A program made the translations under genes and the position numbers. Shown here one piece after another: positions 24,919 through 57,110 of a DNA stretch of 64,000 bases. The stretch is from Styela clava (lineage: Eukaryota). Under the pieces are notes generated by a model that searched no databases, had not been told where the DNA came from, and worked only from the letters and a program-made list of their open reading frames with translations. Within the stretch, counting starts at the first letter, position 1. Every line of letters starts with the position of its first letter. Location: assembly GCF_964204865.1 (NCBI RefSeq), contig NC_135254.1:11842001-11906000 (forward strand), in the 5' to 3' direction.

Positions 24919-25100
24919 GTCTAAACAGTGAAGTCACAAGATTTTTTGTTAAATGACTTGTCAACCTAAATCAATCTGACCTGACACATATACCCCATGG
25001 ATAACACAAGTACAAATCAAATTCAATGCTTGATATTCACATTTTTCGGTGTATAATATATTTATATAACAAATGATGAACTAGCAAACAAATTTTATTC

Positions 25101-25207
25101 CTCCTGAAGTATGCGCACCAAGATGGCGCACAACCTGAACTCAGGTCATGTACCAGGTTAGTGTTCAGGTTGTGCGACATCTTGGTGCGCATACTTCAGG
25201 AGTACCC
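25101..25207. mobile_element. Palindromic MITE (ctcctgaagtatgcgcaccaagatggcg family)
   Basis: ~40-bp near-perfect inverted arms; related copies at 45388-45497, 52060-52169, 56875-57110, with partial copies near 40780 and 48955. Confidence 0.85.
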
Positions 25208-25501
25208 AAATTTTTTCATCAGAATTGTGACAAAAATTTCTTTTTAATTATTCCTTTAAGGACAAATTTATAGTCAAGGTCTAGTTATGGTTTAGGAAGT
25301 ATGCCGTTTCACGCATATTGTTGTTAAGTTTTCAATTTTCAATCAAATTCAGAAATGTTGACATCAGATGTGCATTGCTTCTCAAACCTGTTATAAAATA
25401 TAAAGTCGAGAAAACTCGAACTCAATAGATTGTTTGTGATTTCGGTACGGGACAAAAAAAGTTAAATGGAACTTGGGATGTGTGTAGATGGCCCCGCGAC
25501 C

Positions 25502-28500
25502 TCAACGAATGATTTGTGTATCGTCTTCGAGAACACAAAATACAAAAATGATATAAAATTCTCCTAATCATAAGTTCCGGGATGAATTCAATGATATTGT
25601 TCTGATACCAATTGGCGCACTCGATGGAATAGAAGATGCTATTTTTGTGAGCCATCTCACTTGTTTACCACAATCTCAATCGCATACCAAAGTGGAAACC
25701 CAATGGTGGAAAATTCTTACTATGAGTTACATATTATGTAATGAAACACAAGATTAAGCTTACCAGCAATAGAGCTTCGTAATCCGTCAAATATGATAGC
25801 TTTAATTGGTCCCGAATCTACAAAGTTCGTGTTTTCGTCAATTCGATTGGCATATGTTTCCAATCTATCTATAACCTTGTTAATAAAATCGGCGTCCGTT
25901 TTTGCCATTTTGGCAAGTCTTCTAGTTTCCATCAGTCCTGAAAACGTGGAAATACAAAGAGAATAAAATTTACAAGTTCCCAAGTTTAGTTCCTAAAATT
26001 TTCAGTCATTGCTCATTCTTGCCAGACTGCATTGTTTTAGCTATTGAGTTTAGCTGCGGTTGTCGATTTAGAATATATGTAATAAATAGAAAGATATGCG
26101 AAGGGCATTGTATTTCAGAATGATGAGATGATAATTTGTCTTTCACGGTGTGGATTATAATATTTTTAGAGGTAATACCCCATATAATGCTCCCAATTAT
26201 TACTCACGTTTTGTGTGGCTATCTTCAAATATTACCACTTCGTTGCTCTTTGTACATTTTTTTCCCAAAAACTTCATCAAGACGTAACTCTAAAAGTGTT
26301 CAAACATGGAAAGCTTGAAAATCTAATTTATCCCCAAAATTAATACCGAAGAGTAACATATTACGATTGAGTATTAATACTTATTTCAAATAATTCCATA
26401 TACAATTATCTCTTTGTGTTTAAAATATCTGGGCCGAATATGTAAATAATACAGTTAGAATAGTTGTGTTGTTTATAACATATTACTTCAACAGGAAAAT
26501 CTTTACAGTGTATTAACCATTTCATCGTCGGTATTTCTTCAGGCGAACACACTTTGGTGACTTTTTTGCAGAATGATCTAAACATCGAAATGGGTAAATA
26601 AAGCTCAAAGTTTAGCAAAGACCAATCAAAACTGTTTATGATTTCAAATATTTCAAAATTTAAACCTGCATGGTTGATCCATTCCACAAGGCGAATAGTA
26701 AGCCAAACAGATGAATCTTTCGAGGACGTATCTGCACTCAACCTGAAATGCATGAACAAAATAAATTTCAGCAACAGTGTGGCTGTCTATAAAAACTCTA
26801 TATAAACCATGGTGGATTTGATATGGTCTATCGAGGCAGATGAGTTATATTCCGATGATAAAATGTATAGGCCTACACCAAAAATGAATAAAGATTGGAG
26901 GTATATGATGGCTATCTCACCGACACGTGATTGGCGAGGTTGTCCATCCATTTTATCAAGTTTTGACGATAGGTATCATAAGACGTATTCCCAATTATTG
27001 TCCTTGTAGTATTGTAGCCAAAGTATTTGCACATCGGAACATCTAGTTTTTCACATTCTAGGTATTTGGTTGTAAAATTCATGTCTACATAGCAAACTTA
27101 ATATAACAACCACAAACCATGATTGAAAATATGATATAACATAACACATTTGACGAGAAAACGATATGGAACATTGTTTAAAATTTACTTACGCCTTTCT
27201 GTGGTTTGTTTCGAATCGATACATTTCTATTGAAAATATAAAATAAAATACATTTGCTCACGTAATTTACTAAGGGCGTACTACTAAGACCAGTGAGGGT
27301 TGAATCCCAAATAATTTGATACCAAAAACCAATCACTACGATTTTTCTTAATTGCAAGTCTTGAAACGGACAGTATTCGACCATAACGAGATAAAAACAT
27401 TTCAAATTATAAAAGAAATCACAGGTTTGGGTATTTGAAGGCTTGTCCATGGGAATGGGATGGGACAGCACACATTTGTATTTCCCATGAGACACAAAAA
27501 CCGTATGATTTTCGGGGAAATGATGGTAAAACATTTCGTTATGGATTTCGTGTCCATATATTTGAGCATAGCCCTCTTGTTAGTTATGAAGACCAAAACA
27601 TATTTAGCATTGCAAATATACTTCGTGAAGGGGCTGATGGACACATGCATCATAGTAAGAAATATACAGTTAACAAAGTCGGACGCTAAACCTAAATTTA
27701 ACAATTTTTATTGAATATTATTATAATGGGAATCCCATGGGATGGGACAGGCATAATTGCTATGGGATGTATAAGGAATGAGAGAGAAAAAATGTCCCAT
27801 GGACAAGCCTGGGTATTTGCTTTATTTATATATATTTGTAATGCTCCGTATTCAAAATATTTACCAATAAACGTTTTTAAGGAATACTCACTGTCTCGGA
27901 AAAGTTTTCACAAGACAAAGACGACGGCCACGTAAATCCGAAACTCTGCATTGCGCTGTAGCAGAATCGTTTAGCTTCTTCGCACATGGACCTGTACAAA
28001 AGACTTAAAAAAGTGTTCCGCTGAACAAATACAAGATTTCAGAAAAACTCTCTTAAATCATGTCGAGTAAATTAATCATCCAATACTCATACTTATCCTG
28101 TACTCGGGGGCGAGTCAAACTTTTCTGCTACCCGGGGCGTGTTCCTGATAATGATGCCTTTTATACTTAACTTGCAAAATAACTTGGGAGATAAACAAAT
28201 TATAGATGTGCATGGTTATACATGATGATAATCAAATGTCAAATAATCGTGAAATTTTTGTATTATTATTATTTAAATCAGGGCTTCCCAAATATATTTT
28301 AAAATTTTTCACGGCCCGTGTTCACGCTAATTAGTTCGAAATATGCATTTTTGATATTTTATTGACACCGCTAATTCTTAACTTCTAGTAGGGCTACTCA
28401 AAAATAAAAAACAAACACACATATACTCAGATTAACGTTATTCGATATATTGGGTGCGAATGCTTTTTGCGACATAAAAGTTCAGCCGTGCCGCAATGTT

Positions 28501-31500
28501 TGTTTGTGTAGGCCTAAATGATGAATTACGATGTCTGGCCACCGAGGGCCTGGTCCTTATGCGGAATTGTTCACTCTTATTGATCAAACTTAGCATAAGG
28601 CAGCGGTTTGTGCGCACCAAACTATCAGGGAAAACACTAATGGCGCACCTCCACGAAAAATATGCTGCCGCAAAATAAAACACAATTTTGTCATCCTTAA
28701 TAATATGTACTTTATGCCTTTTGAGGTTTATAAACATGTAGGCCTAAGGAATAAAAGCAAAAAGTTAACTTTTTTTCTTAACTCTGCCTAGTTTTATCTT
28801 TAAATTGCTTAATACTCACTCATGTACGATAACTCGGTTCAGAAATGAATAAACTGCGACCTACGAAATTGCAGCATGCAGGGTATCTGTTATCGTAACA
28901 ATATACCCACGTAACAGAAAGAAAACACCAGAGAACGGTAAAATGAATTTGATTCATATACACATCATTTTCATTAATGAGAAACAATAAAACATTTAGA
29001 ATAATAAAATATGTGATATGTTTCGAGGCGTACTTAGCAAATCGCCTTCCGGAACCGCTAGCTTAGTTATTAAACCCGGCGTTGTTACGCAAGCACACGA
29101 ATCGGATCTTGCGATCAGAATATGCATTGGTATGCAAGCGCGATGATTCTACCGTGTTTCCCCAAAAGTTTCCCCCAAAAAGCCTAAATTTTAAAAATGA
29201 TTTTAATAATATGAAGCGAAAAAAGATTTCGTCGATAGCGCATTTTTTTACCTAGTCCCATGAAAGTGCGTCGTTCCAATTCTGCTAGGCCGTCGCAAAA
29301 TTTAGTGATGGTGTTATAATAAATAGGTTTAATTCTGAAAATTCGGGTTTCTGTAGATAAAGATTATTTTTCCCTGGTTCAAAAAGCGTTGCGCACCCCA
29401 TCCTCCTTGCGATTTCGTATTTATATAAGACAAGCTTTTCTACCATGGCAACAACTACTGAGTCCTAGTCGATAGAAAGAAATCTTTTCTACTTTTTAAA
29501 ATGTGAATGCTCAATAATATAAATGTAGCAGTTATTTTAAATGAAAACGTGGTATTAAATTAGTAAATAAAAACCGGTATTCATATTTTGTATATTAAAA
29601 AATCTCGTTATCATCTACATCCCCAAAAAATGAGCCCTAGTGTTCGGAAGAAACTATTATTAATCACTATTTCTAATAATTGTATTTCGAATCAAGAGTC
29701 TGTAAAAGTACAATTGATATAGTACTTTGTGTAAAATTGGTGTTTTCTTTGCGGCCTCTAGACATGCCTCTGCCTGTATCGCACTTTACTGAATTAAAAA
29801 TATGACGTAATTTACCTGCAAGGATATATCACTTCGTGGGTTGGCGTACATTCTGGTAGATAGGAATAGCAGAGGAACTCTTGAAGATATTTGGAACATC
29901 CTATCTAAAAGTGAGTTATACATAAATAAACTATATAGTCAAATAGTTCCATCACGGGCACATAATGCATGTAAATATGAATTTCACATCACCGAGATCA
30001 ACATGCGTAATGAGAGCACTTTGTCAAATATTGATGCTATTATATAAATGTACCAACTATTTTTCATCTTTTGCTAAATATTTTGAAATTAAACTATGTA
30101 TATATATATGTATACGACTATATTCACACGGATTGCTCTACAGTGGCACATATCTAAAATTAGGTATAAAAATAGCTCAATATACAACAAATCTTCTATA
30201 ACAGATTCTTAGCGACACGTGAATATAAATACCATACGATTTTGCCACTTCATTGCATTATCAATGAATTAAATATAAAGATCATCTGAAATACCTGTAT
30301 TAAGGGATAAAACTGATGCAGCTCCAGTGTTGCGTCAGATTGCCGTTCAAACCTAGCAGTTGGAAAGCTGGTGAAGTTGTATTCCATGTTTCGGCACATA
30401 GTGGATTCAATAGGTTCACAATTTATAGCTGTTTATTTTTTATTTTAAACAGTAATGAAATGGATACAATGAAAATATTTTTTTTTTTAATGTCAATTTC
30501 ACAGCAAATGAGAATTTTTAGATTCATTAAACAGTGCAGGCATAGAGAACACACGGGAATTTTTCCTGTGGTTTTATTTTGCCTTTTTTATTTCAAATCA
30601 AGTGTGATGTTATGTAAATTTGCGCAAAAATACACGTTGTTGCTATATACAAAATGGTATTTCATTTCGTGGTACAATCAATGAACTACTCTGAGTAGAT
30701 AGTTTGAAATTCATTCCAAATCACACCACATAGTAAATTTGACGTAAAAACGATAAACCAAGATTGGAAACATTATTGAATTCACATATTTGCTGAAAAA
30801 AACTATATGAAACAATTGGCCAACAAATTTACTCACGTCTTGCAGTAGATTGTTGAGAATCGAGAGCTTTGCAATTCTGATCACGAGAAAAAGAATAGTT
30901 TACTTCGTTAAGTAGTTTTAATAAAACAACAAAAACTATCGAGCGGTAAATACCAATAAAAAATGACGTGATGTTTATTGAAAAACAATCACAAATAATC
31001 AATTGCGACACGTTTTTATTCGAAATTGCAAGTAACTATACCAAACGCGTCTTGAAGCTGATGGTATTCGGATAAAACAAGATGGAAACATTTTAATTCA
31101 AATTAGTTACAACTTTGGCGTATGCGCCGTGTTCGAAATATTTACTAATGCTAGTACTTAAAGAATACTCACAGTTTCAGAAAAGTTTTCACATGACAAA
31201 ACCGACGGCCACGAAAATCCGAATTTTTCCATTATGTCTTCACAGCCTGGTTTAGCTTCTTCGCACATAGACCTGTACCAAAAAGAACAAAAACCTAATG
31301 TATAAGATCAGGGCAGGATTTACCATTTGGTGGGATAGACTGAAGCACAGTTGCCACAAACAATAGGTGTCTCGATATTCAATCCTGAGTCGTTTTTAAA
31401 TTTCAGAGGCTTGTTTCAAATATAAACGGTTTGAAATTCTAAACTTATATTCATATTTTTTAAATCAGGTTAATAATTTGTGTCGTAATAATTTGCTTTT

Positions 31501-32858
31501 AAAAGAGTAAAAAATCGAATATGCTCGAATAAATAAATTTTATAAACTCAAATATACTAATTTCAACTACTTGAACAGTTTTTATCCTAACAATGACTTA
31601 TGATTTTATGAAAGGAATAAGAAAATATTGATATTTAGATATACTAAAATAGCTACGCAACAACATATCTAAGCCCCGTAACAAACTTAAAGTGCCGGTT
31701 GAGTTACATTTTAATTAATTATGCTAATCCTTCATTGCACCAAACTGAATGAAAAATATGACTAAATTACCTGCAAGGGTAAATCACTTCGTGGCTAGCC
31801 GTACATTCTGGTAGATAGGTATAACAAAGAAACTCTTGAATGCTTTCTGAACATCCTATCTAAACGTGAGTTATATATAAATAGTTGTTACCAAGTGGTG
31901 GCTAATATAGTAAGTTACAAACAAAAAATTCTAATATTGCTCTATCAAGCAAACAAACAGTATGTAAATATTAATTTAACATTGCCAAGGTCAACATTCG
32001 CAATAAGAACACATTTCAAAAGCTGATGTTATTATATTATGTAAACAAATGTTTGCTTTGTGTCAAATGCTTCGAAACCAAGCTGTGTATATATAAGCCT
32101 GCAAATCATTTCGTGTATGGATATATATATTTATCATAAATACTAAGATACCTTAACCAATGGATAAAATTGATGTAACTCTAGTACTGCGTCAGCTTGT
32201 CTTTTAAATCGAGCAGTTGGAAAGCTGGTGAAGTTGTATTCCATGTTTTGGCACATTACGTATTCCACAGGTTCACAACTGATTTCTTAAATTGATTTTA
32301 ATTTAAAATGCGAGTGAAATATTTACAAAATTAGGTAATGTTCTAAGTGATACAAAATCACATGTGCAGCAAGACTCTTGAATAGTTTAGAATAGCTATC
32401 TTCACTCTTGCAACAGCATCCTTGCATTATATGCATACGGATCCACCGGCGCAAGAGCATAGAAGACGGAGCTAGTCTCGTAGAAACCCAATCGTTTGGT
32501 AATGTTGTCTAAAATTTAATACACTTCGTGGTATTCAGTACTCGTTTTTAATTGGCTATAGTTCCCCTGCTCTAGAATATCAAAAAATCTGACAATATTA
32601 TATACAACGGAAGTCATGGATGGGTATTTTAAAATTGCGAAACTAGTTACATGTAGTAAATTAGGTGTCTGAGATTATGTACTTAGTGACTTCAAAGTTC
32701 GATAACATTGCCTGTTTTGAGCTATTTTACCCAGCGTTTATTAAATAAAACTGGGGCTTACCATTATTACCTGTTGTCTGTTGTTTTTCTGTTACTATGC
32801 AATGTAACAAACATAAAAGTAGCTGAATTGCAACGATTAAGTGACTCGCTGTGTTCAT
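25502..32858 (-). CDS. Secreted protein with three tandem Frizzled cysteine-rich domains (CRDs), ~470 aa
   Basis: Hand-spliced phase-consistent exons: 32858-32771 ([23 protein letters not shown] signal peptide); CRD1 32285-32152, 31859-31771, 31272-31173, 30876-30837; CRD2 30428-30295, 29904-29816, 27991-27892, 27226-27193; CRD3 27084 (or 27057)-26921, 26742-26666, 26577-26487, 26289-26208; tail 25937-25764; last exon uncertain (25524-25502, DDTQIIR*). CRD1 = [20 protein letters not shown]...[29 protein letters not shown]...[38 protein letters not shown]; each CRD has 10 Cys in Frizzled spacing. Confidence 0.88.
27438..27811. mobile_element. hAT-type MITE in an intron of the CRD gene
   Basis: TIRs aggcttgtccatggga / tcccatggacaagcct; perfect 8-bp TSD ggtatttg (27430-27437, 27812-27819). 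Confidence 0.9.
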
Positions 32859-40656: not shown

Positions 40657-40842
40657 GTCTAGCCTTACGTGACTACAACATGACCCTGTGAACAGTTGTT
40701 TTTCAACAGCAACCAATAGTTTCACATACGGGCCACGAGCAAGGCAGTTTACGGGGCAGTCTAGCACGTAGCTTTCTCGGTACTCCTGAAGTATGCGTAC
40801 CAAGATGGCGAACACCGGAGGGTAGTATGTGTACCAGGTTAA
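40526..40842 (+). repeat. 317-bp direct repeat, copy 1 (outer flank of the inverted CYP duplicate)
   Basis: Colinear with 48700-49016; I count about 8 substitutions. Confidence 0.95.
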
Positions 40843-42525: not shown

Positions 42526-45500
42526 TTACTCTGCTACATTTCTTGGTTCCACCTTCAAATCGAAGTTCACTTCAGGAGCAAGGGTATTGGTGAATTTGAA
42601 TTTCATGGGCGCCTCCTGTGAAAGTAACTTAATATGTCTTGAGTACGTCATTTTAATAACGTTAAATATACTTAATGAAAACAAAAAGACAAATGCACTC
42701 CCAAGCTGTAACAGAATATAATTGTATTATACATTGAAGTAATTTTTTGATTTCTATGAGTAACGTATAACAACCATATTGTCCACAAGAGCATACCCAA
42801 TGTTTGTCATCACGTAAAGCCCGTATCAATAATTAACTTTATCACATAGCGTAACGAGATGATTCAATAAATAATTCGTGATTATAATGAAGCTAATATA
42901 GAAGTGTTTACAAACCGGTGTATTCTCTGCAGGTTTAATAGTAAACTGGTGTAAAATCTTCGCTAGTGCCATCTTGACTTCTATCAGTGCAAATCTCAAG
43001 CCAATGCAATTTCTCGGTCCTGCTCCAAACGGTTGAAACATCATCGGATCAATTTGGCTTATGTCGCGCATTCTGAAAATATCAACTCCAAATAAATGAG
43101 CGGTCAATACTGGACATCTACATTTTCATTTTTCATACTTCAAACTGTTATCATGCTTCTGGGGTTTTAAAGGCTACAAATCGCAATCGCTCGTGTGTAG
43201 GGAAAAAAATAAGAGATACTAGAATTGAACATATTGATATTTCGTATTTATCATAACAGAACAATGTGGTGAAAAACTGCAGTGCATTTCATAGTCGTCT
43301 CACGCCAAAATTCATTGCTCGCTTTATTTTACGAGCATTCCAGGATATTGATTCGGTTTCAGTTGGACTAACTACCCACCATTCCTCTGTGTTTTTATGC
43401 CAGTGGATCCATATGCATATAATACAAGGATGCTATAGCAAAATTAAAAACTACTATTCTAAATAATTCCATATAAATCCACCACGTGGTAATATTTTAA
43501 GTAATTCAAGAGTTTTGGTGCACATCTAGTGGCAAATCTAGCTCAAGTCTTGAATTATGTAGTTTAGTTGAATCATGTATGTCTGGGACGACTGACTTTG
43601 GTCAGATGAAACGTTCCAAAAATATCATTGTGCTAGTGTGAAGCGAAACTATTGAATTACTCGGAATATTAGCACGTGTTTGCTTTATATTTTCATGGAA
43701 ATATTGGTCAATATTTAAATATCATATTTGACTTTCTCATTATACGAAATTGCTTGCTGTTTATACCATTTTTATCAGTTATGGCAAATATTACATTGAA
43801 CTAAATTGACTATATTTAATGTCTATGTAGTACAAAAAAAATGGGTAATTCTAAATTAAATCTTAAGCTGCTCAGCCGTTGCTAAATGTTTATTGACCAT
43901 TACTGTTTAATTATATAAATGAGTTGAATTGAAAAAAAAAAAGATACCTTTCCGGTTTATAAGCAAACGGCTCGTCCCAATACTCAGGGCCATGTGACAG
44001 TCCATACATCGGTATGGCAACCAACAATCCTGCTGGTATTGTGAGGCCATTGATTGTTGTTTCTCTTTCAGCTATGCGAGCCTTTCTAAACATAAATATT
44101 TACGATGGAAGGTTCTACAAAGAAATGCATTTTACCCATAAATACACTCATAATTCAGAACGAAAGCATTATATAACTTTACGTTGCACTAAATATTGCA
44201 CACGGAAAAAACCTAAAATTTGCAAATTTTCATCCTATTGTTCAACAGTCCAATTTTTGGAGTTTCAAGAATATTTTTTAGTTCAAAATTGTTCGTACTA
44301 TACAATTCGCCTTTTTACCCACAAAAAATAAAAACATTTAAAATAAAACGTACTTTATAATTGGCGTATAAAGTCTATAAGAGTTTCATTGATACACATG
44401 TCCAGAAACTTCAAGCCATTTATACCATCATAATCCAGTTTGCCCTGAATAATCATTAAAAATGTTATTATTATGCTGCACATCACGAATTAAGTATTGT
44501 GTACAGCGCATTGGGATCTTGTCACAAGTAACAAAAAATCTTTCCCATTTGAAAAACAAATTTGCAGGCATAGACAGTATGGAAGTCAATTTAATGTATT
44601 TCTGTGGCATTCGAAAAGCTTGATTGATTTTACGTCAAAAGGGTCCTAAAAAGCAGAAACTACATTAGAAATTAAATCTGTTCATAACATATATACATGA
44701 GTTTTTATCATTTCATCTCTTTCTTCTTGAACTTTGGCCTGTATTTCCGGATGTCGGGCAAAATTGAAAAAGAAACTAAAAACGAATTATTAATACACGG
44801 CGATAATGCACTGGTTGTAATTGTAATAGTATTTATTATTTTGAAGAAGAGAAATATTTATAAAATGTAGTTGTTTTATCAGTGCACGTTATGGTATATC
44901 TGGAGGTTCTGGAACGTCTGGACAGAAATTTTCAAGTTGTTTTGAGAATGTCAGAACACAATTTCGGAATAACATATTACGTGAGTATAAAGCGTTGATT
45001 AATTGCCTTTTATACAGCATGCTAACATTGTTTCACAGCTAAACTGCTGGTCATTAACTAAAGCACTTACTCTTTTGAATTGGAAACTCCCCCATTGTTC
45101 TCAACCTTCTTATTTAATGATACAATAGCGTTATCAGCACACCATTCCATTATCGTCGTCATTTGCCTCAACTTTGCGGAGGAAAAAGTTAGTGTCAGTG
45201 TGTTTCTATAACAATATTATTGCAAATATATTCGTACCAATATGGTAACATAATTAAGTGCATCGAAAACCAGGAAGCTTCATGAAGTCAAGTATTTCTG
45301 TTTTAATACAGACATTATACGTGAAATAAATATCAATTAGGGCCGGGTTTTGCAACCATTTATCTAATGTGTACATAAATAAATATTGGACCTCCTGAAG
45401 TATGCGCACCAAGATGGCGCACAGCCTGAACTCAGGTTGTGTACCAGGTTAGGGTTCAGGTTATGCGACATCTTGGTGCGCATACTTCAGGAGTACCTAA

Positions 45501-48425
45501 ATATCACAGTAATGACGAAGAACTAATGGATATTAATAATACTACAGAAAATATAAATCAAAATTCCTCCATAAGAACAACAAAACTCTAAGAAGAACAA
45601 CTCAACGTAGCAGATAAACATTATATTATAATATATACAGATTTTTTGTGAATCACAGTTACGATTAAAATAAAATAATGCATTTTTCTTTGGTATATCT
45701 CGTGATATCAATGTATACCTCATACGTTTCCACTGTTTTAGATCAACATTGGTTAAACTGTTGTTCAACTCTTCGCCGCTAATCTTCAAGAAACGACGCT
45801 AAACATATACAAAAAAATACAATCCCAAAGATGTCAGGCTAGCAACAGAAAGTTGGCAGTTGCCTAAGGTCCTATGTATCGCTTTATGGTAAATGATAAT
45901 TATCATTTAATATATCTTTTTTTTACGTTTAATCCAAACAGCGATATATGATGGTGATTGAAAAAGTCACCCACTCAACAATAAATTTAACAAAATATAT
46001 CACCACTCCACCTGGCGCATTGCAAAATTTGAAAACTCTTTTATGAAAATTTGTCTCAGTATGTCAGGATCATGAATGTGAATCGTTGGGGTAATTCTGA
46101 AGTAAGTCCTGAAAATATTTAAATTTGGTAAATGTACGAAGTACAGTTAGCAAATGAAAAATCTAAAGATTATCCATTTTGCTTTGTTAGGCGTTTCGCT
46201 TTTTCTCGTCTGTATTGATATAAAACGGCTCATGTTTTCCAGATAACTCTGCAACTTCACCGGTGAATTAGGGATTTTTGCCGTCAAGTTGGCGATTGGA
46301 GACTTTGTTTTAAGAATAATTGCAAAAAATTCCTTACTTATATAGAAGCAAAGTATTGAAAATTGTATATTGATGAAATTCACCTACCCGTACACATTTC
46401 CAAACTTTTCTTTGCATTTGTTATCATACCGCAACGCTGCCTGAAAAATTGAAATTCACACGGAAAATTTAGGTGTTTACGAGATTTTTATAACGACGCA
46501 GCAATAAGAGTGCAATGTAACTTTGGCCTCAAAACGTCTTTGAAAATAACACACTAAATTAGGGTTGCCATACCGTCCGGAAAATTCCGGACATGCCCGG
46601 AATTTACGGTTAAATTTTGCGTCCGGGAAGAATTTAAAAATTCTCAAATGTCCGGAATCCGGAATTTTACTGCACCTGCAATCTTACTATGCACACTGCT
46701 AATACAGAACATTGTTATTTCGTACCGCGCGCATATTTTCACTACGAAGTCATGAAAATAGTTATGCACCGTCCGGAATTTTGCTTTTTCAAATATGGTG
46801 ACCCTACACTAAATAGTGAATGTGGCAATGCAGTTCAGGAATAAATTCGTTATTTCAGGTAAAATACATTAAAAAGACCGGAAATTGCTAATTTCGAATT
46901 TCTCCAAATTCATGAATTGGATCGATATAGGACCCGTTGTATATAGACAAACAGATGACAACCAAAAATATAATTGGATCGATGACATATGGTAATTAGT
47001 ATTCCATACTCGAATCGATAACCCCTGATGGAATCGATATCACCATACGCACATACGTGGTATGGTTTCAATTGGATATTCAAAAGGGAGGTATTAAAAG
47101 GTCTGGTATTAGGAGTCGAATCGTCTGTATCAGTGTCGTTTCGTCATGTCTTCATCGTTTGTTCTCCGTGTCTATCTACAATATTAAACTACTTCAACAA
47201 CGTTCAACATCGTTCTTCAACGTGTTTTTATTGGCTAAAATGGTGACAACGTGTTCTTTATTGGCTAAAGCAGTACACATAATTATAGCAACTATAAAAT
47301 AAAAAGCAGGAGAGAAATTTATCCAGATAGTCATTAATAATTTAGCAGTTTTTCCGTCGTTACCGCAAGCTTGAATTGGTAGCCAGTTAAATATGCCTAC
47401 CTCCGCTCCGAAAGTATAAGATAAGTGTCCAAACTTTCGAATTGAACAAGGCTCGTGTGGAATATTAATATTTTTCAGGTATTGCCATTTCCGATGAATA
47501 TAATATCTGAACAAACGAAAAGAGGAAAATGAAACACACTGGAGAAAACTTGTGTACCAGACCATGGCTAAATATCTACCAAACACCTTTTTTAACTATA
47601 ACAATGCCCAATTAAACAATTGCAATTTATTTTAATCAACTAAAAAATGGAAATTAGACATAAATGAATTTGATACATACGAGTACGACACAGTCAGAAT
47701 GTAGCCAAAGCGTATAGGAAGCTTGTCAACGCGGATGGTGGCAAATGGCAAGCTTTACCGACCAAGAGATTACGTCATTCGCGGCGGTTGGAGGGTATGA
47801 CAGGCATTGTCGCATTATACATATATGGGCACGACAGTGTTGTGCTCTCGAGCAAACAAGAGCCCGATGAGATGGAAATTGAATCTCGTTTACGATCCGA
47901 GCAATAAGTATAGTACGTTCCCGATATAGCTATATAAACACTATCCGTATGTTCTAGCATGTCATAGTTAATCAATCATCATTTATTCATCAAAACAATA
48001 TAAGCGTATTATAAGAAAAAAAACCTTATAAATAACAAAAGCTTATTAAAAAGTCTGGGACATTCTGATACAACAATGATCACATTCATTTATTTTTTTT
48101 CTGCTAAAATAACAAAAGACCCAAGGAAAATAAAAATTTCTGGTCTGTGATTTACATACAACTAGTCAGCCCGGAGAGCATGTTGACTGGGATTGTTTCG
48201 AAAAACAAGTCGAAGTATTTAGTCACGTTTTGTGTTTCATTTTTAACCCTGCATTCGAGCCGCAATAACAGTAAGCACAGACGCTGCCAAGGTTCTGCGT
48301 CAAAACTTACTTTAAAAGATTATAAGATAGATATAGTCGTTTATGCGAACTTACCTGCCTAACGCCAATAAGCTGATGATTAAAACCCAAGTCTCAATGG
48401 ATAGAATGTCCAGTGGAGTGATCAT
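42526..48425 (-). pseudogene. CYP3-like cytochrome P450 pseudogene (inverted duplicate)
   Basis: Same exons as 49800-56461, but a ~1.37-kb deletion at ~44770 fuses the start of exon 7 to mid exon 10 (removing the I-helix), and a 2-nt insertion at ~44377 frameshifts the ETLR motif; the heme motif FGAGPRNCIG is still intact. Confidence 0.9.
46560..46806. mobile_element. hAT-type MITE inserted after the duplication
   Basis: TIRs tagggttgccata / tatggtgacccta; 8-bp TSD cactaaat; tccgga subterminal repeats; empty site at ~50960 in the other arm. Confidence 0.92.
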
Positions 48426-48699: not shown

Positions 48700-49016
48700 C
48701 TATTATTTCTCCATGAAAAACATCAACATCAAAATCTAGTTTCAGTTTAGTTGTCGCAGCATCAGGCGGGCCAGATTGAATTACCTAACGGGCCGGATAT
48801 GGCCCACGGGCCGTAGTTGGCCAATGTCAGGTCTAGCCTTAGGTGACTACAACATGACCCTGTGAACAGTTGTTTTTCAACAGCAACCAATAGTTTCGCA
48901 TACGGGCCACGAGCAAGGCAGTTTACGGCGCAGTCTAGCGCGTAGCTTTCTCGTTACTCCTGAAGTATGCGTACCAAGATGGCGAACACCGGAGGGTAGT
49001 ATGTGTACCAGGTTAA
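48700..49016 (+). repeat. 317-bp direct repeat, copy 2 (inner flank of the inverted CYP duplicate)
   Basis: Colinear with 40526-40842; only this copy continues into the remainder of the MITE it ends in. Confidence 0.95.
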
Positions 49017-49799: not shown

Positions 49800-52700
49800 A
49801 TGATCACTCCACTGGACATTCTATCTATTGAGACTTGGGTTTTAATCATCAGCTTATTGGCGTTAGGCAGGTAAGTTCGCATAAACGACTATATCTATCT
49901 TTTAATGTAAGTTTTGACGCAGAACCTTGGCAGCGTCTGTGCTTACTGTTATTGCGGCTCGAATGCAGGGTTAAAAATGAAACACAAAACGTGACTAAAT
50001 ACTTCGACTTGTTTTTCGAAACAATCCCAGTCAACATGCTCTCCGGGCTGACTAGTTGTATGTAAATCACAGACCAGAAATTTTTATTTTCCTTGGGTCT
50101 TTTGTTATTTTGGCAGGAAAAAAAATAAATGAATTTGATCATTGTTGTATCAGAATGGCCCAGAATTTTTAATAAGCTTTTGTTATTTATAATGTTTTTT
50201 CTTATAATACGTTTATATTGTTTTGATGAATAAATGATGATTGATTGACTATGGACATGCTAGAACATACGGATAGTGTTTATATAGCTATATCGGGTAC
50301 GTACTATACTTATTCCTCGGATCGAAAATAAGATTTAATTTCCATCTCATCGGGCTCTTGTTTGCTCGGAAGCACAACACTGTCGTGTCCATATATGTAT
50401 AATGCGACAATGCCTGTCATACCCTCCAACCGCCGCGAATGACGTAATCTCTTGGTCGGGAAAGTTTGCCATTCGCCACCATCCGCGTTGACAAGCTTCT
50501 TATATGCTTTGGCTACATTCTGGCTGTGTCGTATGTATCAAATTCATTTATGTCTAATTTTCATTTATTAGATGAATAAAAAAAATTGCAATTGTTTAAT
50601 TGGGCATTGTTATAGTTATTATAGGGGTTCGGTAGGTATTTAGCCATGGTCTGGTACACAAGTTTTCTCCAGTGTGTTTCATTTTTCTTTTTTCGTTTGT
50701 TCAGATATTATATTCATCGGAAATGGCAATACCTGAAAAATATTAATATTCCACACGAGCCTTGTTCAATTCGAAAGTTTGGACACTTATCTTATACTTT
50801 CGGAGCGGAGGTAGGCATAGATATTTGGCTACCATTTCAAGCTTGCGCCGGTAACGACGGAAAAACTGCTAAATTATTAATGACTATCTGGATAAATTGC
50901 TCTCCTGCTCTTTATTTTATAGTTGCTATAATTATGTGTACTGCATTGCCACATTCACTATTTAGTGTGTTATTTTCAAAGACGATTTAAGGCCAAACTT
51001 ACATTACACTCTTATTGCTGCGTCGTTATAAAAATATCGTAAACACCTAAATTTTCTGTGTGAATTTCAATTTTTCAGACAGCGTTGCAGTATGATAACA
51101 AATGCAAAGAAAAGTTTGGAAATGTGTACGGGTAGGTGAATTTCATCAATATACAATTTTCAATACTTTGCTTCTATATAAGTAGGGAATTTTTTTGCAA
51201 TTATTCTTAAAACAAAATCTTTTATCGCCAACTTGACGGTAAAAATCCCTTATTCACCGGTGAGGTTGCAGAGTTATCTGGTAAACAGTTTTGAGAAAAC
51301 ATGAGCCGTTTTATATCAATACAGACGAGAAAAAGCGAAACGCCTAACAAAGCAAATTGGATAAACTTTAGATTTCATTTGCTAACTGTACTTCGTACAT
51401 TTACCAAATTTAAATATTTTCAGGACTTACTTCGGAATTACTCCAACAGTTCACATTCATGATCCTGACATACTGAGACAAATTTTCATAAAAGAGTTTT
51501 CAAATTTTGCAATGCGCCAGGTGGAGTGGTGATGTATTTTGTCAAATTTATTGTTGAGTGGGTGTTATCAATTAATTTTAACAACTTTTTCAATCACCGT
51601 CATATGTCGCTGTTTGGATTAAACGTAAAAAAAGATATATTAAATGATAATTATCATTTACTATAAAGCGATACATAGGACCTTATGCAACTGCCACCTT
51701 TCTGTTGCTAGCCTGACATCTTCGAGATTTTCTTTTTTTGTATATGTTTAGCGTCGTTTCTTGAAGATTAGCGGCGAAGAGTTGAACAACAGTCTAACCA
51801 ATGTTGATCTAAAACAGTGGAAACGTATGAGGTATACATTGATATCACGAGATATTCCTTGAGAAATACACGAGAAAAATGCATTATTTTATTTTAAACG
51901 TAACTGTAATTCACAAAAAAATTTGTATAATCTAATGTTTACGTGCTACGTTAAGTTTCTCTTCTTAGAGTTTTGTTGTTCTTATGGAGGAATTTTGATT
52001 TGTATTTTCTGTAGTATTTATAAATATCCATTGGTTCTTCGTCATTTCTATAATATTTAGGTACTTCTGAAGTATGCGCACCAAGATGTCGCATAACCTG
52101 AACCCCAACCTGGTACACAACCTGAGTTCAGGTTGTGCGCCATCTTGGTGCGCATACTTCAGGAGGTCCAATATTTATTTATGTACACATTAGATAAAGA
52201 TTGCAAAACCCGACCCCAATTGATATTTATTTCAAGTATAAAGGCTGCATTGAAACAGAAATACTTGACTTCATAAAGCTTCCTGGTTTTGGATGCACTT
52301 AATTATGTTACCATATTGGTACGAATATATTTGCAATAATATTGTTATAGAAACACACTGACACCAACGTTTTCATCCGCAAAGTTGAGGCAAATGACGA
52401 CGATAATGGAATGGTGTGCTGATAACGCTATTGTAGCATTAAATAAGAAGGTTGAGAACAATGGTGGAGTTTTCAATTCAAAAGAGTAAGTACTTTAGTT
52501 AATGACCAGCACTTTAGCTGTGAAACAATGTTAGCATGCTGTATAAAAGGCAATCAACCAACGCTTTATACTCACGTAATATGTTATTCCGAAATTGTGT
52601 TTTGACATTCTCAAAACAACTTGAAAATTTCTGCTTAGACGTTCCAGAACCTCCAGATATACCATAACGTGCACTGGTAAAACAACTTCATTTTTTAAAT

Positions 52701-55700
52701 ATTTCTCTCCTTCAAAATAATAAATACTATCACAATTACAACCAGTGCATTATCGCCGTGTATTAATAATTCGTTTTTAGTTTCTTCTCTCGAATTTCGT
52801 TGGATGTGGTCTGCTCTGCAGCTTTTAGTACCAAAGTAGATTCAATTAACGACACTGAAAATGAGCCCGAAATTGTTAAGAAGGCTAAAGAGCTTATGAA
52901 AGGTGGAGGAGTTTTGAGCAAGATGTTTGTTTTACTTATAGGTAATAATTTATTGTTTTCAGATGGATATAATATTCTCATAAACATAATTGCACTTGGT
53001 CTATTGTCACTCAAATTTCGTGCAAAATAAGATTTCAACCACATATCATCTAGTTTTATTGTATTCTGTAGAGAAAGTGAAAAATTGTGCTCTTTGGCAT
53101 CAAGTTAAATATAGATTTACATATACATTGTTCGTTGAAGCTGTTGAAGGACGTTCTGTTGATAAATAACAAATGATACCGCAAATATATTTCTCATGAG
53201 TAATACTGTTGTTGTATTTTGTTAAAGAATGTTTTGTTACATCTAGATATTTTTTCCGTAAATAGCTATTCACTGATATTTGATAAATTTATCCACATTT
53301 ATTTATAATAAACACAGTGTTGTCTGAGTTTCTCGAGAAGGTCCTCGAAAAATTGAATATTCCGTTGGTTCGTGGTGAGTCGCTCAAGTACTTCAGGAGA
53401 CTTACGGATCACGTGATAGAAAAAAGGAAAAATAATCCACATGATACGGTATTTCTTGATTTATTACTATACGAAATGTGTGTAGCAAAGCACAGCGGAC
53501 AAATTTGTGTTGCAGCATCAGGAATGATACCTTACATATCATGATATGATACCTTACTCAAGTTTAACGATCTGATAAACTACGAAAAATATACACAGAA
53601 TGAATATCTCTGGTAAACTTTTGGGAAACCCACAACTGGCAGGTGTAAATTTTCTTATATTTAAGCTATTGACATGTGACTGCATATATATACCATAGAT
53701 TGTTTCCTCATACAGGGACGTGTTGATTTGATGCAATTGATGTTAGATGCTGAAATATCTCCGGATAAAGTAAAGGAGGGCGCCGAAAAAGGTTTTTGTT
53801 TCACTATTTTTTTATGGTTATGAAGTCAAGTAATTGGGTAGTTTTCACATGAAGACACCAATCCAGCAGAAACGCTTTAAAAATATAGCATGCGGATCTC
53901 GATTAATGTAAAGCCTGTCGGTCTCTATATATATAACTGAGTATTACGTGTAGGTTTCTTTTTTTAATAACGAATCATGTAAAACTCCAACATGGTCTGG
54001 CAGCCGAGCCATATCACACGCACATTTACAAAAGCCTGGAATTTACTGCAGTATGGTTTACCTAGGTTTGACAAAAATCGAAATCATTGGTAATTCTATG
54101 CTGATGATAATGGCTGGATACCAAAACACTGGAAACCTGATGAGTTGGACTTCCTTCAATTTTGCTCGACATCCGGAAATACAGGCCAAAGTTCAGGAAG
54201 AAATAGATGAAATGATAAAAACTCATGTATGTTATAAACAGATTTAATTTCTAATGTAGTTTCTACTCAGCTTTTTAGGACCCTTTTGACGTAAAATCAA
54301 TCAAGCTTTTTGAATGCCACAGAAATACATTAAATTGACTTCCATACTGTCTATGCCTGCAAATTTGTTTTTCAAATTGGAAAGATTTTTTGTTACTTGT
54401 GACAAGATCCCAATGCGCTGTACACAATACTTAATTCGTGATGTGCAGCATAGTAATAACATTTTTAATGGTTATTCAGGGCAAACTGGATTATGATGGT
54501 ATAAATGGCTTGAAGTTTTTGGACATGTGTATCAATGAAACTCTTAGACTTTACACGCCAATTATAAGGTACGTTTTATTTTAAATGTTTGTATTTTTTG
54601 TGGGTGAAAAGGTGAATTGTATAGTACGAACAATTTCGAACTAAAAATGTTCTTGAAACTCAAAAAATTGGACTGTTAAACAATAGGATGAAAATTTGCA
54701 AATTTTAGGTTTTTTCCGTGTGCAATATTTAGTGCAACGTAAAGTTATTAAAGTTATATTGAAATTGGGAATTGATAAGAACATTTTATATAATCACTAA
54801 GGAAGGTAATGTTGGTTAATTTGTCATGTAATTTTAGCTATATAGCCTGCCCTATATAATGCTTTCGTTTTGAATTATGAGTGTATTTATGGGTAAAATG
54901 CATTTCTTTGTAGAACCTTCCCTCGTAAATATTTGTGTTTAGAAATGCTCGCATAGCTGAAAGAGAGACAACAATCAATGGCCTCACAATACCAGCAGGA
55001 TTGTTGGTTGCCATACCGGTGTATGGACTGGCACATGACCCTGATTATTGGGACGAGCCATTTGCTTATAAACCGGAAAGGTATCTTTTTTTAATTCAAC
55101 TCATTTATATAATCAAACCATAATGGGCAATAAACACTTAAAGCAACGACTGAGCAGCTTAAGAATATAATTTCAAAATTACCCAGTTTTTTGTACTACA
55201 TAGACATTAAATATAGTCAATTTAGTTTTAATGTAATATTTGCCATAACTGATAAAAAAATGGTATAATGAGCAAGTCAAATATGATATTTAAATATTGA
55301 CCAATATTTCCATGTAAATATAAAGCAAACACGTGCTAATATTCCGAGTAATTCAATAGTTGCGCTTCACACTAGCTCAATGATATTTTTGGAACGTTTC
55401 ATTTGACCAAAGTCAGTCGTCCCAGACATACATGATTCAACTAAACTACATAATTCAAGAATTGAGCTAGTTTTGCCACTAGATGTGCACCAAAACTCCT
55501 GGATTACTTAGAATATTACCACGTGTTTGATTTATATGGAATTACTTAGAATAGTAGTTTTTAATTTTGCTATAGCATCCTTGTATTATATGCATATGGA
55601 TCCACTGGCATATAAACACAGAAGAAGGATAAGTAGTTAGTCCAACTGAAACCGAATCAATATCCTGGGATGCTCGTAAAATAAAGCGCGCAATGAATTT

Positions 55701-56874: not shown

Positions 56875-57110
56875 GGGTGCTCCCGTAGTATGTGAATCAA
56901 GATGGCGGGCCCCGAAACGTAGTATGTGTGCCAAGTCAGGGTTAGGCCATAATTTCAGGTACAAACACTACGGGAGTCACTTGGATAGTCCCCGAACTCG
57001 TACCAGAACTAAAATAAGGTAAATTGGAATAAAATTATGGCCTAACCTTTACCTGGTACACGTACTATGTTCAGGAGCCCGCCATCTTGGTGCACATACT
57101 ACGGGAGCGC
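56875..57110. mobile_element. Longer member of the palindromic MITE family, present in the right arm only
   Basis: TIRs gggtgctcccgtagtatgtg / cacatactacgggagcgcc; absent at the homologous site ~42120. Confidence 0.85.

Follow-up and report, generated by a model that had tools for sequence, protein, structure and literature searches.

A Styela clava gene predicted to encode a secreted protein with three tandem Frizzled-type CRDs and a helical tail

The locus and its gene model

The window analysed here is a stretch of 64,000 nucleotides from the ascidian Styela clava (contig NC_135254.1, positions 11,842,001 to 11,906,000 of the forward strand). It is free of N runs and carries a gene of 15 short exons on its minus strand (Table 1). 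Joined in phase and without a stop, the exons give a coding sequence running from 32858 down to 25332 (window coordinates, used throughout), with AG acceptors and GT donors at all 15. The join is exactly that of RefSeq XP_077969007.1 (LOC120344696, "uncharacterized protein", 474 aa, Styela clava). NCBI has modelled three isoforms for this gene, with products of 474-477 residues depending on the isoform, and the joins found here are identical to those of isoforms X2 and X1 (XP_077969007.1 and XP_077969005.1).

The original prediction, made from the DNA alone, was that about 15 exons splice in phase into a signal peptide, three ten-cysteine CRDs and a tail, and the exact RefSeq join bears this out. 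The gene had also been described as hidden. This holds for a prokaryote-style list of open reading frames, from which the gene is absent, but not for the NCBI annotation, where it is present as LOC120344696. Two of the predicted boundaries have to be moved. The acceptor of exon 10 had been placed at 27084, an in-frame alternative that adds nine residues to the product, whereas RefSeq uses 27057. Likewise, the gene had been taken to end at 25502, and the coding sequence in fact continues for 170 bases beyond that point. Two candidates for the last exon (one with an acceptor at 25638, the other with an acceptor at 25524 and the stop at 25502) were rejected, as RefSeq uses 25387-25332. Downstream of the stop, the poly(A)-signal-like hexamers listed in Table 1 likely mark the 3' end of the transcript. 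The idea that the gene is unannotated was also dropped. It came from a single-exon query against 1.84 billion representatives, which returned no Styela protein (best identity 57%); the RefSeq model exists, and the match is missing because of the 50% clustering of those representatives.

Table 1. Features of LOC120344696 in the 64-kb window, in the order of transcription.
Feature	Position	Strand	Evidence
Exon 1: start codon (32858-32856) and signal peptide, residues 1-29; ends in phase 1	32771..32858	-	RefSeq joins; hydrophobic core at residues 4-22
Exon 1 of isoform X1: donor 9 bases further on, exon end at 32762		-	XP_077969005.1 join
Exon 2: first third of CRD1, with C1, C2, YNFT sequon, PTARF, HQFYPL	32152..32285	-	Pfam Fz positions 1-44, E 1.2e-4
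Exon 3: middle of CRD1, C3-C6	31771..31859	-	Pfam Fz positions 45-76, E 3.2e-5
Exon 4: last third of CRD1, with C7-C9, MEKFGFSWP	31173..31272	-	Pfam Fz positions 76-108, E 2.2e-7; genome scan
Exon 5: 40-base linker exon with the tenth cysteine of CRD1	30837..30876	-	GT-AG; phase restored; in RefSeq
Exon 6: first third of CRD2, duplicate of exon 2	30295..30428	-	Pfam Fz E 3.7e-5
Exon 7: middle of CRD2, duplicate of exon 3	29816..29904	-	Pfam Fz E 2.9e-5
Exon 8: last third of CRD2, MQSFGFTWP, duplicate of exon 4	27892..27991	-	Pfam Fz 33.4 bits, E 7.1e-8; genome scan
Exon 9: 34-base linker exon with the tenth cysteine of CRD2	27193..27226	-	Splice sites; RefSeq join
Exon 10: first part of the divergent CRD3, with C1, C2, YNTT sequon	26921..27057	-	Pfam Fz E 0.056 only; RefSeq acceptor 27057
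Exon 11: middle of CRD3, C3-C6; phase as in exons 3 and 7	26666..26742	-	Splice sites; RefSeq join
Exon 12: last third of CRD3, C7-C9; FGF-x-WP motif gone	26487..26577	-	Splice sites; RefSeq join
Exon 13: tenth cysteine of CRD3 and start of the tail	26208..26289	-	Splice sites; RefSeq join
Exon 14: main amphipathic helix of the tail	25764..25937	-	Predicted helix at residues 395-434; unique in genome
Exon 15: last 18 residues and TGA stop	25332..25387	-	Peptide located; exact RefSeq join
Poly(A)-signal-like hexamers: ATTAAA (25248-25243), AATAAA (25099-25094)	25094..25248	-	Sequence only

Domain content of the product

LOC120344696 would encode a secreted glycoprotein made of a signal peptide, three CRDs and a helical tail, secretion being predicted from the signal peptide. 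The latter is the sole hydrophobic segment of the chain (residues 4-22, KD19 2.24); after it no segment exceeds a KD19 of 0.78, which leaves no candidate for a transmembrane (TM) helix in the product. When the whole RefSeq product is compared with Pfam, the only family found is Fz (PF01392), matched in three stretches at 214.6 bits (E 3.8e-64, against a gathering score of 32.1 bits), in line with the three hits that had been predicted. Taken exon by exon, the exons of CRD1 and CRD2 match Fz at E 1e-4 to 7e-8. The same scan found no netrin domain (PF01759), no PF01534 and no Ig family in the product, nor the LDLa, scavenger-receptor and trypsin domains that, together with a TM anchor, are of the corin type. 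Moreover, tblastn with proteins bearing the Frizzled seven-helix (7TM) or netrin (NTR) domain found no such exons in the 64 kb. The absence of TM and netrin domains, also part of the original prediction, is thereby upheld. Of the 32 cysteines, two lie in the signal peptide and ten in each CRD, with the spacing 7-35-8-6-9-3-6-16-7 in both CRD1 and CRD2 and 7-38-8-6-5-3-6-13-17 in CRD3.

Judging from their sequences, CRD1 and CRD2 are Frizzled-1/2/7-like and the product of an internal tandem duplication. Their closest solved relatives are the CRDs of FZD7, FZD2 and FZD1; in particular, exon 2 has FZD7 and FZD2 as its best solved relatives, and exon 4 matches the FZD7 CRD at E 1e-9. The products of exons 6 and 2 are 78% identical, and exon 7 matches its other copy at 70% over 357 columns, a match that extends into the adjoining intron. 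Comparing the CRD1 and CRD2 units gives a dN/dS of 0.22 at a dS of 0.68: the two domains are under purifying selection.

All the motifs that had been reported for CRD1 and CRD2 were located: HQFYPL (residues 67 and 188), M-x-x-FGF-x-WP (118 and 239), PTARF (52 and 173) and the YN-x-T sequons. Two of these contain Q-F-x-P-L and M-x-x-Y/F-G-F, which we take, from the Fz8-XWnt8 structure, to line the groove for palmitoleate; CRD1 and CRD2 both have them, and CRD3 has neither. The PTARF motif is a departure from P-N-x-x-x-H, whose N and H are kept in at least 90% of 38 aligned homologues; CRD1 and CRD2 carry T and F there instead (P-T-A-R-F).

CRD3 reads as a genuine CRD, albeit a very divergent one, from which the groove residues are gone. 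Its score against an HMM of CRDs from other species is 48.1 bits; none of 1000 shuffles came as high, even when the cysteines kept their positions (maximum 22.7). In the CRD tree its branch is very long, at 3.4-3.7 changes per site, and no close likeness to it was found among 381 retrieved proteins.

Predicted fold and helical tail

The AlphaFold2 model of the protein shows the mainly helical fold of a CRD and has a mean pLDDT of 81.4, with CRD1 and CRD2 mostly above 90. Foldseek matches it to the CRDs of FZD8, FZD2, FZD7, FZD5 and FZD4 with target TM-scores of 0.75-0.89 (which of the three CRDs is matched is not specified) and an rmsd of mostly 1.2-2.7 A. The matches include the lipid-bound structures 5URV (FZD7), 5URY (FZD5) and 5UWG (FZD4). 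Free fatty acids and Norrin are among the ligands of the matched Frizzled CRDs.

The tail comprises 91 residues, and its main amphipathic helix, encoded by exon 14, has a hydrophobic moment of 2.11, compared to 1.39 +/- 0.24 in shuffles. The tail has no Pfam match, no other copy in the genome, no usable match in the ESM Atlas and no counterpart among the 381 retrieved proteins. In the monomer model its pLDDT is 50-76. Modelled as a dimer, the tail scores 0.73 (best of three controls 0.00), with at least 96% of contacts common to three runs and a partner pLDDT of at least 82. This score is the model's own confidence and no measurement. Of 30 proteins whose solved structures are pairs of one chain, 21 reached its pass mark, compared with 0 of 23 solved as single chains; for eukaryotes the corresponding counts are 17 of 29 pairs (7 of 16 in animals) and 0 of 30. 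According to this model, two chains may pair through the tail.

Relatives and described systems

The architecture had at first been thought unlike any recognised one. A secreted tandem-CRD protein without netrin is, however, already described: sFRP-1 of the sea urchin Strongylocentrotus purpuratus (Illies 2002, Khadka 2018), which has a signal sequence, four tandem CRDs and one Ig domain (located between CRD3 and CRD4), with neither netrin nor TM (PMC5778778). It is a tested extracellular Wnt antagonist, which antagonises Fzl5/8-JNK signalling, and relatives have been described in sea stars (PMC5778778). The Styela protein shares with it a signal sequence, tandem ten-cysteine CRDs, the lack of NTR and TM, and restriction to a lineage (PMC5778778). 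It differs in having three CRDs without an Ig domain, a degenerate CRD3 and a helical tail predicted to dimerise. Furthermore, the urchin CRDs are related to sFRP3/4 (PMC5778778), whereas CRD1 and CRD2 of Styela are nearest to FZD1/2/7. In the CRD tree (116 columns) Styela CRD1 and CRD2 pair at 100/100, deep forks are without support, and sea star arrays do not join the Styela CRDs; orthology with the echinoderm genes gains no support from this tree, in which the urchin sequence itself was not included.

Other known systems share parts of this layout. The sFRP family (sFRP1/2/5, sFRP3/4, Crescent, Sizzled) consists of secreted Wnt modulators with an N-terminal Frizzled-type CRD, but there one CRD is followed by an NTR domain, in place of three CRDs and no NTR. 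Platynereis FzCRD-1 to -3 and further CRD-only proteins are secreted and, like the Styela protein, have a signal peptide and CRD without netrin; they carry a single CRD and form no array (PMC4669655). The authors interpret them as duplicates specific to their lineage, with a possible modulating role in Wnt signalling (PMC4669655). Frizzled-1/2/7 receptors have the closest CRD sequences, yet combine one CRD with a seven-helix domain (PF01534) that is missing in the Styela protein. A locus at C16:7.917 Mb, considered as a paralogue, turned out to be an ordinary Styela Frizzled receptor gene; it has an intron directly after HQFYPLV(K/E), as does LOC120344696. In the latter, the introns lie in phase 0 after HQFYPLV-K and in phase 2 after P-C, and the tenth cysteine has a mini-exon of its own.

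Beyond these cases, unnamed arrays with Fz as their only domain number well over a hundred in public databases and belong to fishes, corals, echinoderms, hemichordates and crustaceans. The Fz-only multi-CRD proteins listed by a profile search come from teleosts, corals, echinoderms, a hemichordate, crustaceans and a hydrozoan. Examples of the unnamed database arrays are XP_076868251.1 (Brachyhypopomus, 3 CRDs), XP_070562716.1 (Ptychodera, 4), CAL4186659.1 (krill, 7) and XP_047484369.1 (Penaeus, 13 matched stretches). Eight database arrays were scanned, and all contain Pfam PF01392 only, repeated 3 to 7 times. Like the Styela protein, these arrays have CRDs of the FZD1/2/7 kind with HQF(Y/W)PL, their extra regions being mostly short or absent; the PTARF change, the Styela tail and a close CRD3 occur in none of them. 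Some relatives have a transmembrane helix after three CRDs, and one is named as a spider venom component, U68-Liphistoxin. Fish relatives named 'atrial natriuretic peptide-converting enzyme-like' carry PF01392 only, and this corin-type NCBI name is a naming artefact. Most array CRDs cluster in the tree within their own protein or with a close relative and not across lineages, which points to separate expansions or to homogenisation inside each array. In this setting the predicted label 'lineage-specific' holds in one sense, namely that Styela CRD1 and CRD2 pair with full support and that the tail and a close CRD3 are unshared among the proteins retrieved.

In the literature, we found no published function for the unnamed Fz-only multi-CRD arrays and no description of a Frizzled-CRD array with its own oligomerisation module. 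Searches on tandem or multiple Frizzled CRDs and on Styela/Ciona sFRP returned no tunicate multi-CRD gene.

A proposed role in Wnt signalling

Sequence, structural models and analogy together make it plausible that the protein is a secreted, multivalent molecule that traps or carries Wnt or binds lipids. Our preferred reading, to which we give a probability of about 0.55, is that the Styela protein is a lineage-specific, possibly dimeric, secreted Wnt-binding modulator that acts as a decoy or buffer; Wnt binding, antagonism and dimerisation are all predicted roles. The grooves of CRD1 and CRD2 would take the palmitoleate-bearing thumb of Wnt ligands, and the protein would therefore, as we propose, compete with Frizzled receptors in the extracellular space as a diffusible Wnt decoy or buffer, like sea urchin sFRP-1. 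Pairing of two chains through the tail would bring four groove-competent CRDs together in one particle and raise its avidity. CRD3, lacking the groove residues, would more likely be a spacer or bind something else.

sFRPs and Frizzled CRDs are also able to potentiate or carry Wnts, and for sFRPs effects on Wnt that are biphasic or widen its range have been reported. The protein might be a carrier or potentiator whose grooves protect the lipid of Wnt, hold Wnt in solution and let it act further away or pass it on to receptors. Groove conservation and multivalency would serve such a role equally well, and the predicted tail dimer fits a shuttle as well as a trap. Sequence does not separate the two roles. 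Given that the only tested tandem-CRD protein, urchin sFRP-1, acts as an antagonist (PMC5778778), we regard a carrier as rather unlikely. The ligand could also be something other than Wnt (free fatty acids, sterols, a cystine-knot ligand such as Norrin, or a microbial product), with the CRD serving as a general hydrophobic-groove module. The replacement of the near-invariant N and H before helix 1 in CRD1 and CRD2 (PTARF), the lack of groove motifs in CRD3, the Foldseek matches to fatty-acid-bound and Norrin-bound Frizzled CRDs and the relative named as a venom component are all in keeping with this. Nevertheless, the closest sequences are the FZD1/2/7-type CRDs of Wnt receptors, which also have these groove motifs, and we hold a non-Wnt ligand to be unlikely. 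A more speculative and decidedly unlikely possibility is that a covalent-free tail homodimer, with four groove CRDs and two diverged ones, forms a tunicate-specific multivalent scaffold, which would cross-link lipidated Wnts or shuttle them and not just sequester them, its P-T-A-R-F loop and CRD3 being tuned to the Wnts of its own genome.

Two further explanations would remove the function or change the protein. The very long branch of CRD3, and the lack of an orthologue with the tail or a similar CRD3 among the 381 retrieved proteins, might be expected of a young, lineage-specific duplicate with little or no transcription that is decaying or functionless. We consider this very unlikely, since 15 of 15 exons are intact with canonical splice sites, 30 of 30 CRD cysteines are retained, three isoforms are modelled by NCBI and the low dN/dS has been kept over a duplication old enough to have reached its present dS. 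The model could instead cover only a portion of a longer protein, membrane-bound or multi-domain, that has distant TM, netrin, protease or Ig exons; some relatives do have a transmembrane helix after three CRDs, and sea urchin sFRP-1 contains an Ig domain (PMC5778778). This is largely refuted, and highly improbable, because the RefSeq models end at 25332 with poly(A)-like signals beyond the stop, the window holds no 7TM or NTR exon, Pfam finds Fz only and no hydrophobic segment follows the signal peptide.

Implications

The secreted Fz-only tandem-CRD architecture is not new, and the Styela gene is an uncharacterised member of a known but neglected class; the finding overturns nothing. Secreted Frizzled-CRD arrays have apparently expanded separately in many animal lineages, and only the sea urchin one has been tested. 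Because ascidian embryos are easy to manipulate, an example from an ascidian chordate would be a second tractable case. The predicted dimerising tail, the missing groove residues of CRD3 and the two near-invariant positions that differ in CRD1 and CRD2 offer experimental handles, and the protein could help to show how multivalent CRD proteins shape Wnt gradients.

Gene structure and annotation

The triple-CRD gene (LOC120344696) lies on the minus strand of a window that has no runs of N and a GC content of about 34%. From 25.4 to 32.9 kb the stop-to-stop frames hold cysteine-rich pieces repeated in threes, and reading the sequence for AG acceptors and GT donors set 14 exons that join in phase and free of stops. 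Two mini-exons of 34-40 bases, one in CRD1 and one in CRD2, supply the tenth cysteine of their domain and restore the phase. A profile search, whose query aligned an eel single-CRD protein with the window exons as separate rows, retrieved XP_077969007.1 (isoform X2, 474 residues). The gene, described as hidden in the original prediction, is thus already in RefSeq, with further isoforms: X1 (477 residues) and X3 (435 residues, lacking the signal peptide and beginning within CRD1) belong to the same cluster. Joining 15 exons of the window gives products identical to X2 and X1 at every residue. The multi-exon, in-phase structure proposed earlier therefore stands, except that exon 10 starts at 27057 rather than at the in-frame AG at 27084 and that the gene runs past the predicted lower bound of 25502.

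The same cluster includes an older 124-residue fragment, XP_039269939.1, labelled 'frizzled-5-like isoform X5', which is 98.3% identical to the gene product over 121 residues. A single change was read by eye (E to G within the CRD2 sequence NMEYNFT), hinting at a polymorphism or an older assembly.

Features in and around the triple-CRD gene and related receptor loci (window positions unless a locus is named)
Feature	Position	Remarks
Last exon	25387-25332	RefSeq model
Poly(A)-like hexamer	25248	3' of the stop; from sequence
Poly(A)-like hexamer (AATAAA)	25099	3' of the stop; from sequence; within the palindromic repeat
Palindromic MITE-like repeat	25086-25216	~130 bases, 80% self-complementary; just downstream of the gene
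Copy of palindromic repeat	45377-45502	91%
Copy of palindromic repeat	52052-52180	90%
Shorter piece of palindromic repeat	40779-40841	inside CYP region
Shorter piece of palindromic repeat	48954-49015	inside CYP region
Shorter piece of palindromic repeat	57051-57107	inside CYP region
Repeat in intron 1	32380-32470	~85 bases
Copy of intron 1 repeat	43383-43469	77% identical; opposite strand
Copy of intron 1 repeat	55546-55629	77% identical
Frizzled-1/2/7-like receptor gene	L001:4950-6750 (G000:C16:7916949-7918749)	CRD split by three introns
Open frame of 1688 residues	L003:4493-9559 (G000:C13:18020992-18026058)	one Fz domain near its start

Two receptor loci elsewhere in the genome carry related domains. 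The Frizzled-1/2/7-like receptor has one intron directly after HQFYPLV(E), a position common to the triple-CRD gene. The 1688-residue frame belongs to LOC120337160 (2548 aa), for which precomputed Pfam assignments give PF00002 (secretin-type 7TM region) and PF01825 (GPS motif); it resembles an adhesion-GPCR-like receptor that bears a Frizzled CRD.

Domain content

Exon by exon, the pieces of CRD1 (E 1.2e-4, 3.2e-5, 2.2e-7) and CRD2 (E 3.7e-5, 2.9e-5, 7.1e-8) match the Pfam Fz model and span its positions 1-44, 45-76 and 72-108, and a six-frame scan of the whole 377 Mb assembly recovered both C-terminal CRD pieces independently. In CRD3 the first exon alone matches Fz (E 0.056). The full product yields Fz as its sole Pfam family (214.6 bits) in three stretches, as predicted for PF01392. 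Its 32 cysteines comprise 2 in the signal peptide and 10 in each CRD, with a spacing of 7-35-8-6-9-3-6-16-7 in CRD1 and CRD2 and 7-38-8-6-5-3-6-13-17 in CRD3. Against an HMM of other species' CRDs the three domains score 133.0, 128.4 and 48.1 bits, respectively; none of 1000 CRD3 shuffles, including those with cysteines fixed, reached 48.1 bits (maximum 22.7). CRD3 is not a chance pattern.

That these domains form part of a longer multi-domain protein is largely excluded. Besides the Pfam result, tblastn of twelve relatives against the whole 64 kb, including proteins with a Frizzled membrane region and with a netrin domain, found nothing beyond the CRD exons at 26.5-32.4 kb. Residues 4-22 are the sole hydrophobic segment, in agreement with the signal peptide first proposed; beyond them 0.78 is the highest 19-residue Kyte-Doolittle value, which leaves no membrane helix and no GPI-like end. 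A single RefSeq transcript model spans all three CRDs, which had been expected to share one transcript.

Structure and tail

With a 38-row alignment as input, AlphaFold2 gave a model of mean pLDDT 81.4, with values mostly above 90 in CRD1 and CRD2 and mostly about 80-90 in CRD3. Foldseek matches the model to Frizzled CRDs with target TM-scores from 0.75 to 0.89, including lipid-bound FZD7, FZD5 and FZD4.

The tail, 91 residues past the last cysteine (13 basic, 13 acidic), has no relatives in Pfam, the Styela genome, the ESM Atlas or the retrieved proteins. Helices are predicted at residues 395-434, 441-460 and 462-473 (pLDDT 50-76). The top 18-residue amphipathic moment, taken from an 80-residue tail model, is 2.11 against 1.39 +/- 0.24 in shuffles, and the helix lies in exon 14, common to both tail models. 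When two copies of residues 386-474 were modelled together, the complex score was 0.73 (best of three controls, 0.00), and three runs had at least 96% of contacts in common with a partner pLDDT of at least 82. The pass mark for complexes was reached by 21 of 30 solved one-chain pairs and none of 23 solved single chains; among eukaryotes, by 17 of 29 pairs (7 of 16 in animals) and none of 30 single chains. As a prediction, the complex model supports a tail dimer.

Evolution and related arrays

A tandem duplication some 2 kb long gave rise to CRD1 and CRD2. Their exons share about 79% DNA identity, with one match extending into an intron at 70%. In a tree of 65 CRDs, which does not resolve the deep forks, the two pair at 100/100, the CRD3 branch is very long, and most domains group with others from their own protein or from a close relative. 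Such a pattern is consistent with lineage-specific expansions that happened repeatedly, or with homogenisation inside the individual arrays.

The architecture, at first not recognised as a known one, is not new. Searching one exon against 1.84 billion representatives gave 147 matches, many with 3 to 13 CRD matches per protein. Fz was the only Pfam family in the eight multi-CRD proteins scanned (from knifefish, acorn worm, krill, shrimp and corals, and named 'uncharacterized'), and PF01392 was the sole family in nearly all of 120 further proteins listed by a later profile search (many teleosts, corals, sea stars, crustaceans and one hydrozoan). PMC5778778 describes predicted-secreted novel proteins with at least one Frizzled CRD from many taxa, and refers to a published view of the CRD as a mobile evolutionary unit. 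In Platynereis, three genes encode secreted proteins of the CRD-only type (PMC4669655). Sea urchin sFRP-1, which antagonises Fzl5/8-JNK signalling in anterior neuroectoderm restriction, likewise combines a signal sequence and tandem CRDs without a netrin or membrane domain, but it has four CRDs and one Ig domain (PMC5778778), whereas the Styela product has three CRDs and Fz alone in Pfam. A literature search found no publication on a tunicate multi-CRD gene.

Other designs were also seen. Three eel proteins (P0069, P0276, P0279) have a signal peptide and at least one Frizzled CRD, and PF01392 is their sole Pfam family; in P0069 a stretch of roughly 160 residues, matching no Pfam family, follows the CRD, and one relative is named 'secreted frizzled-related protein 2-like' with no netrin domain recorded. 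These proteins represent another CRD-plus-tail design. Protein P0016, whose cluster lies on ENA contigs of 2-3 kb, has three CRDs followed by a clear transmembrane helix and then a short cytoplasmic tail, so that CRD arrays occur in membrane-anchored as well as secreted form.

Proposed function

Among solved structures, CRD1 and CRD2 come closest to the CRDs of FZD7, FZD2 and FZD1. Both domains retain HQFYPL and M-x-x-FGF-x-WP, as originally noted, and we take these motifs to hold residues lining the palmitoleate groove (from the Fz8-XWnt8 structure); CRD3 has lost both. The P-T-A-R-F replacement is likewise present in CRD1 and CRD2, at a site where 90% or more of the 38 homologues in the alignment have N and H. 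The best-supported reading is that the protein may act as a secreted Wnt-binding modulator, and the initial suggestion of a Wnt trap, carrier or lipid-binder seems reasonable. The grooves of CRD1 and CRD2 would take in the Wnt lipid and the protein would thereby compete with receptors; the tail may double the valency, and CRD3 could be a spacer or bind something else.

Three alternatives stand beside this reading. With the groove motifs kept in two domains, the protein could carry Wnt rather than trap it, or, with both motifs lost from CRD3 and P-T-A-R-F in the other two, bind a non-Wnt lipid or ligand. The gene could also be young and functionless. Over 107 codons the CRD1 and CRD2 units show 77% protein identity, a dS of 0.68 and a dN/dS of 0.22, and both have therefore long been under purifying selection.

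As a secreted Wnt-binding modulator or otherwise, the Styela protein is a new, uncharacterised example within a known class of secreted Frizzled-CRD arrays. Its distinctive features are the predicted dimer-forming tail, PTARF in CRD1 and CRD2, and a degenerate CRD3.
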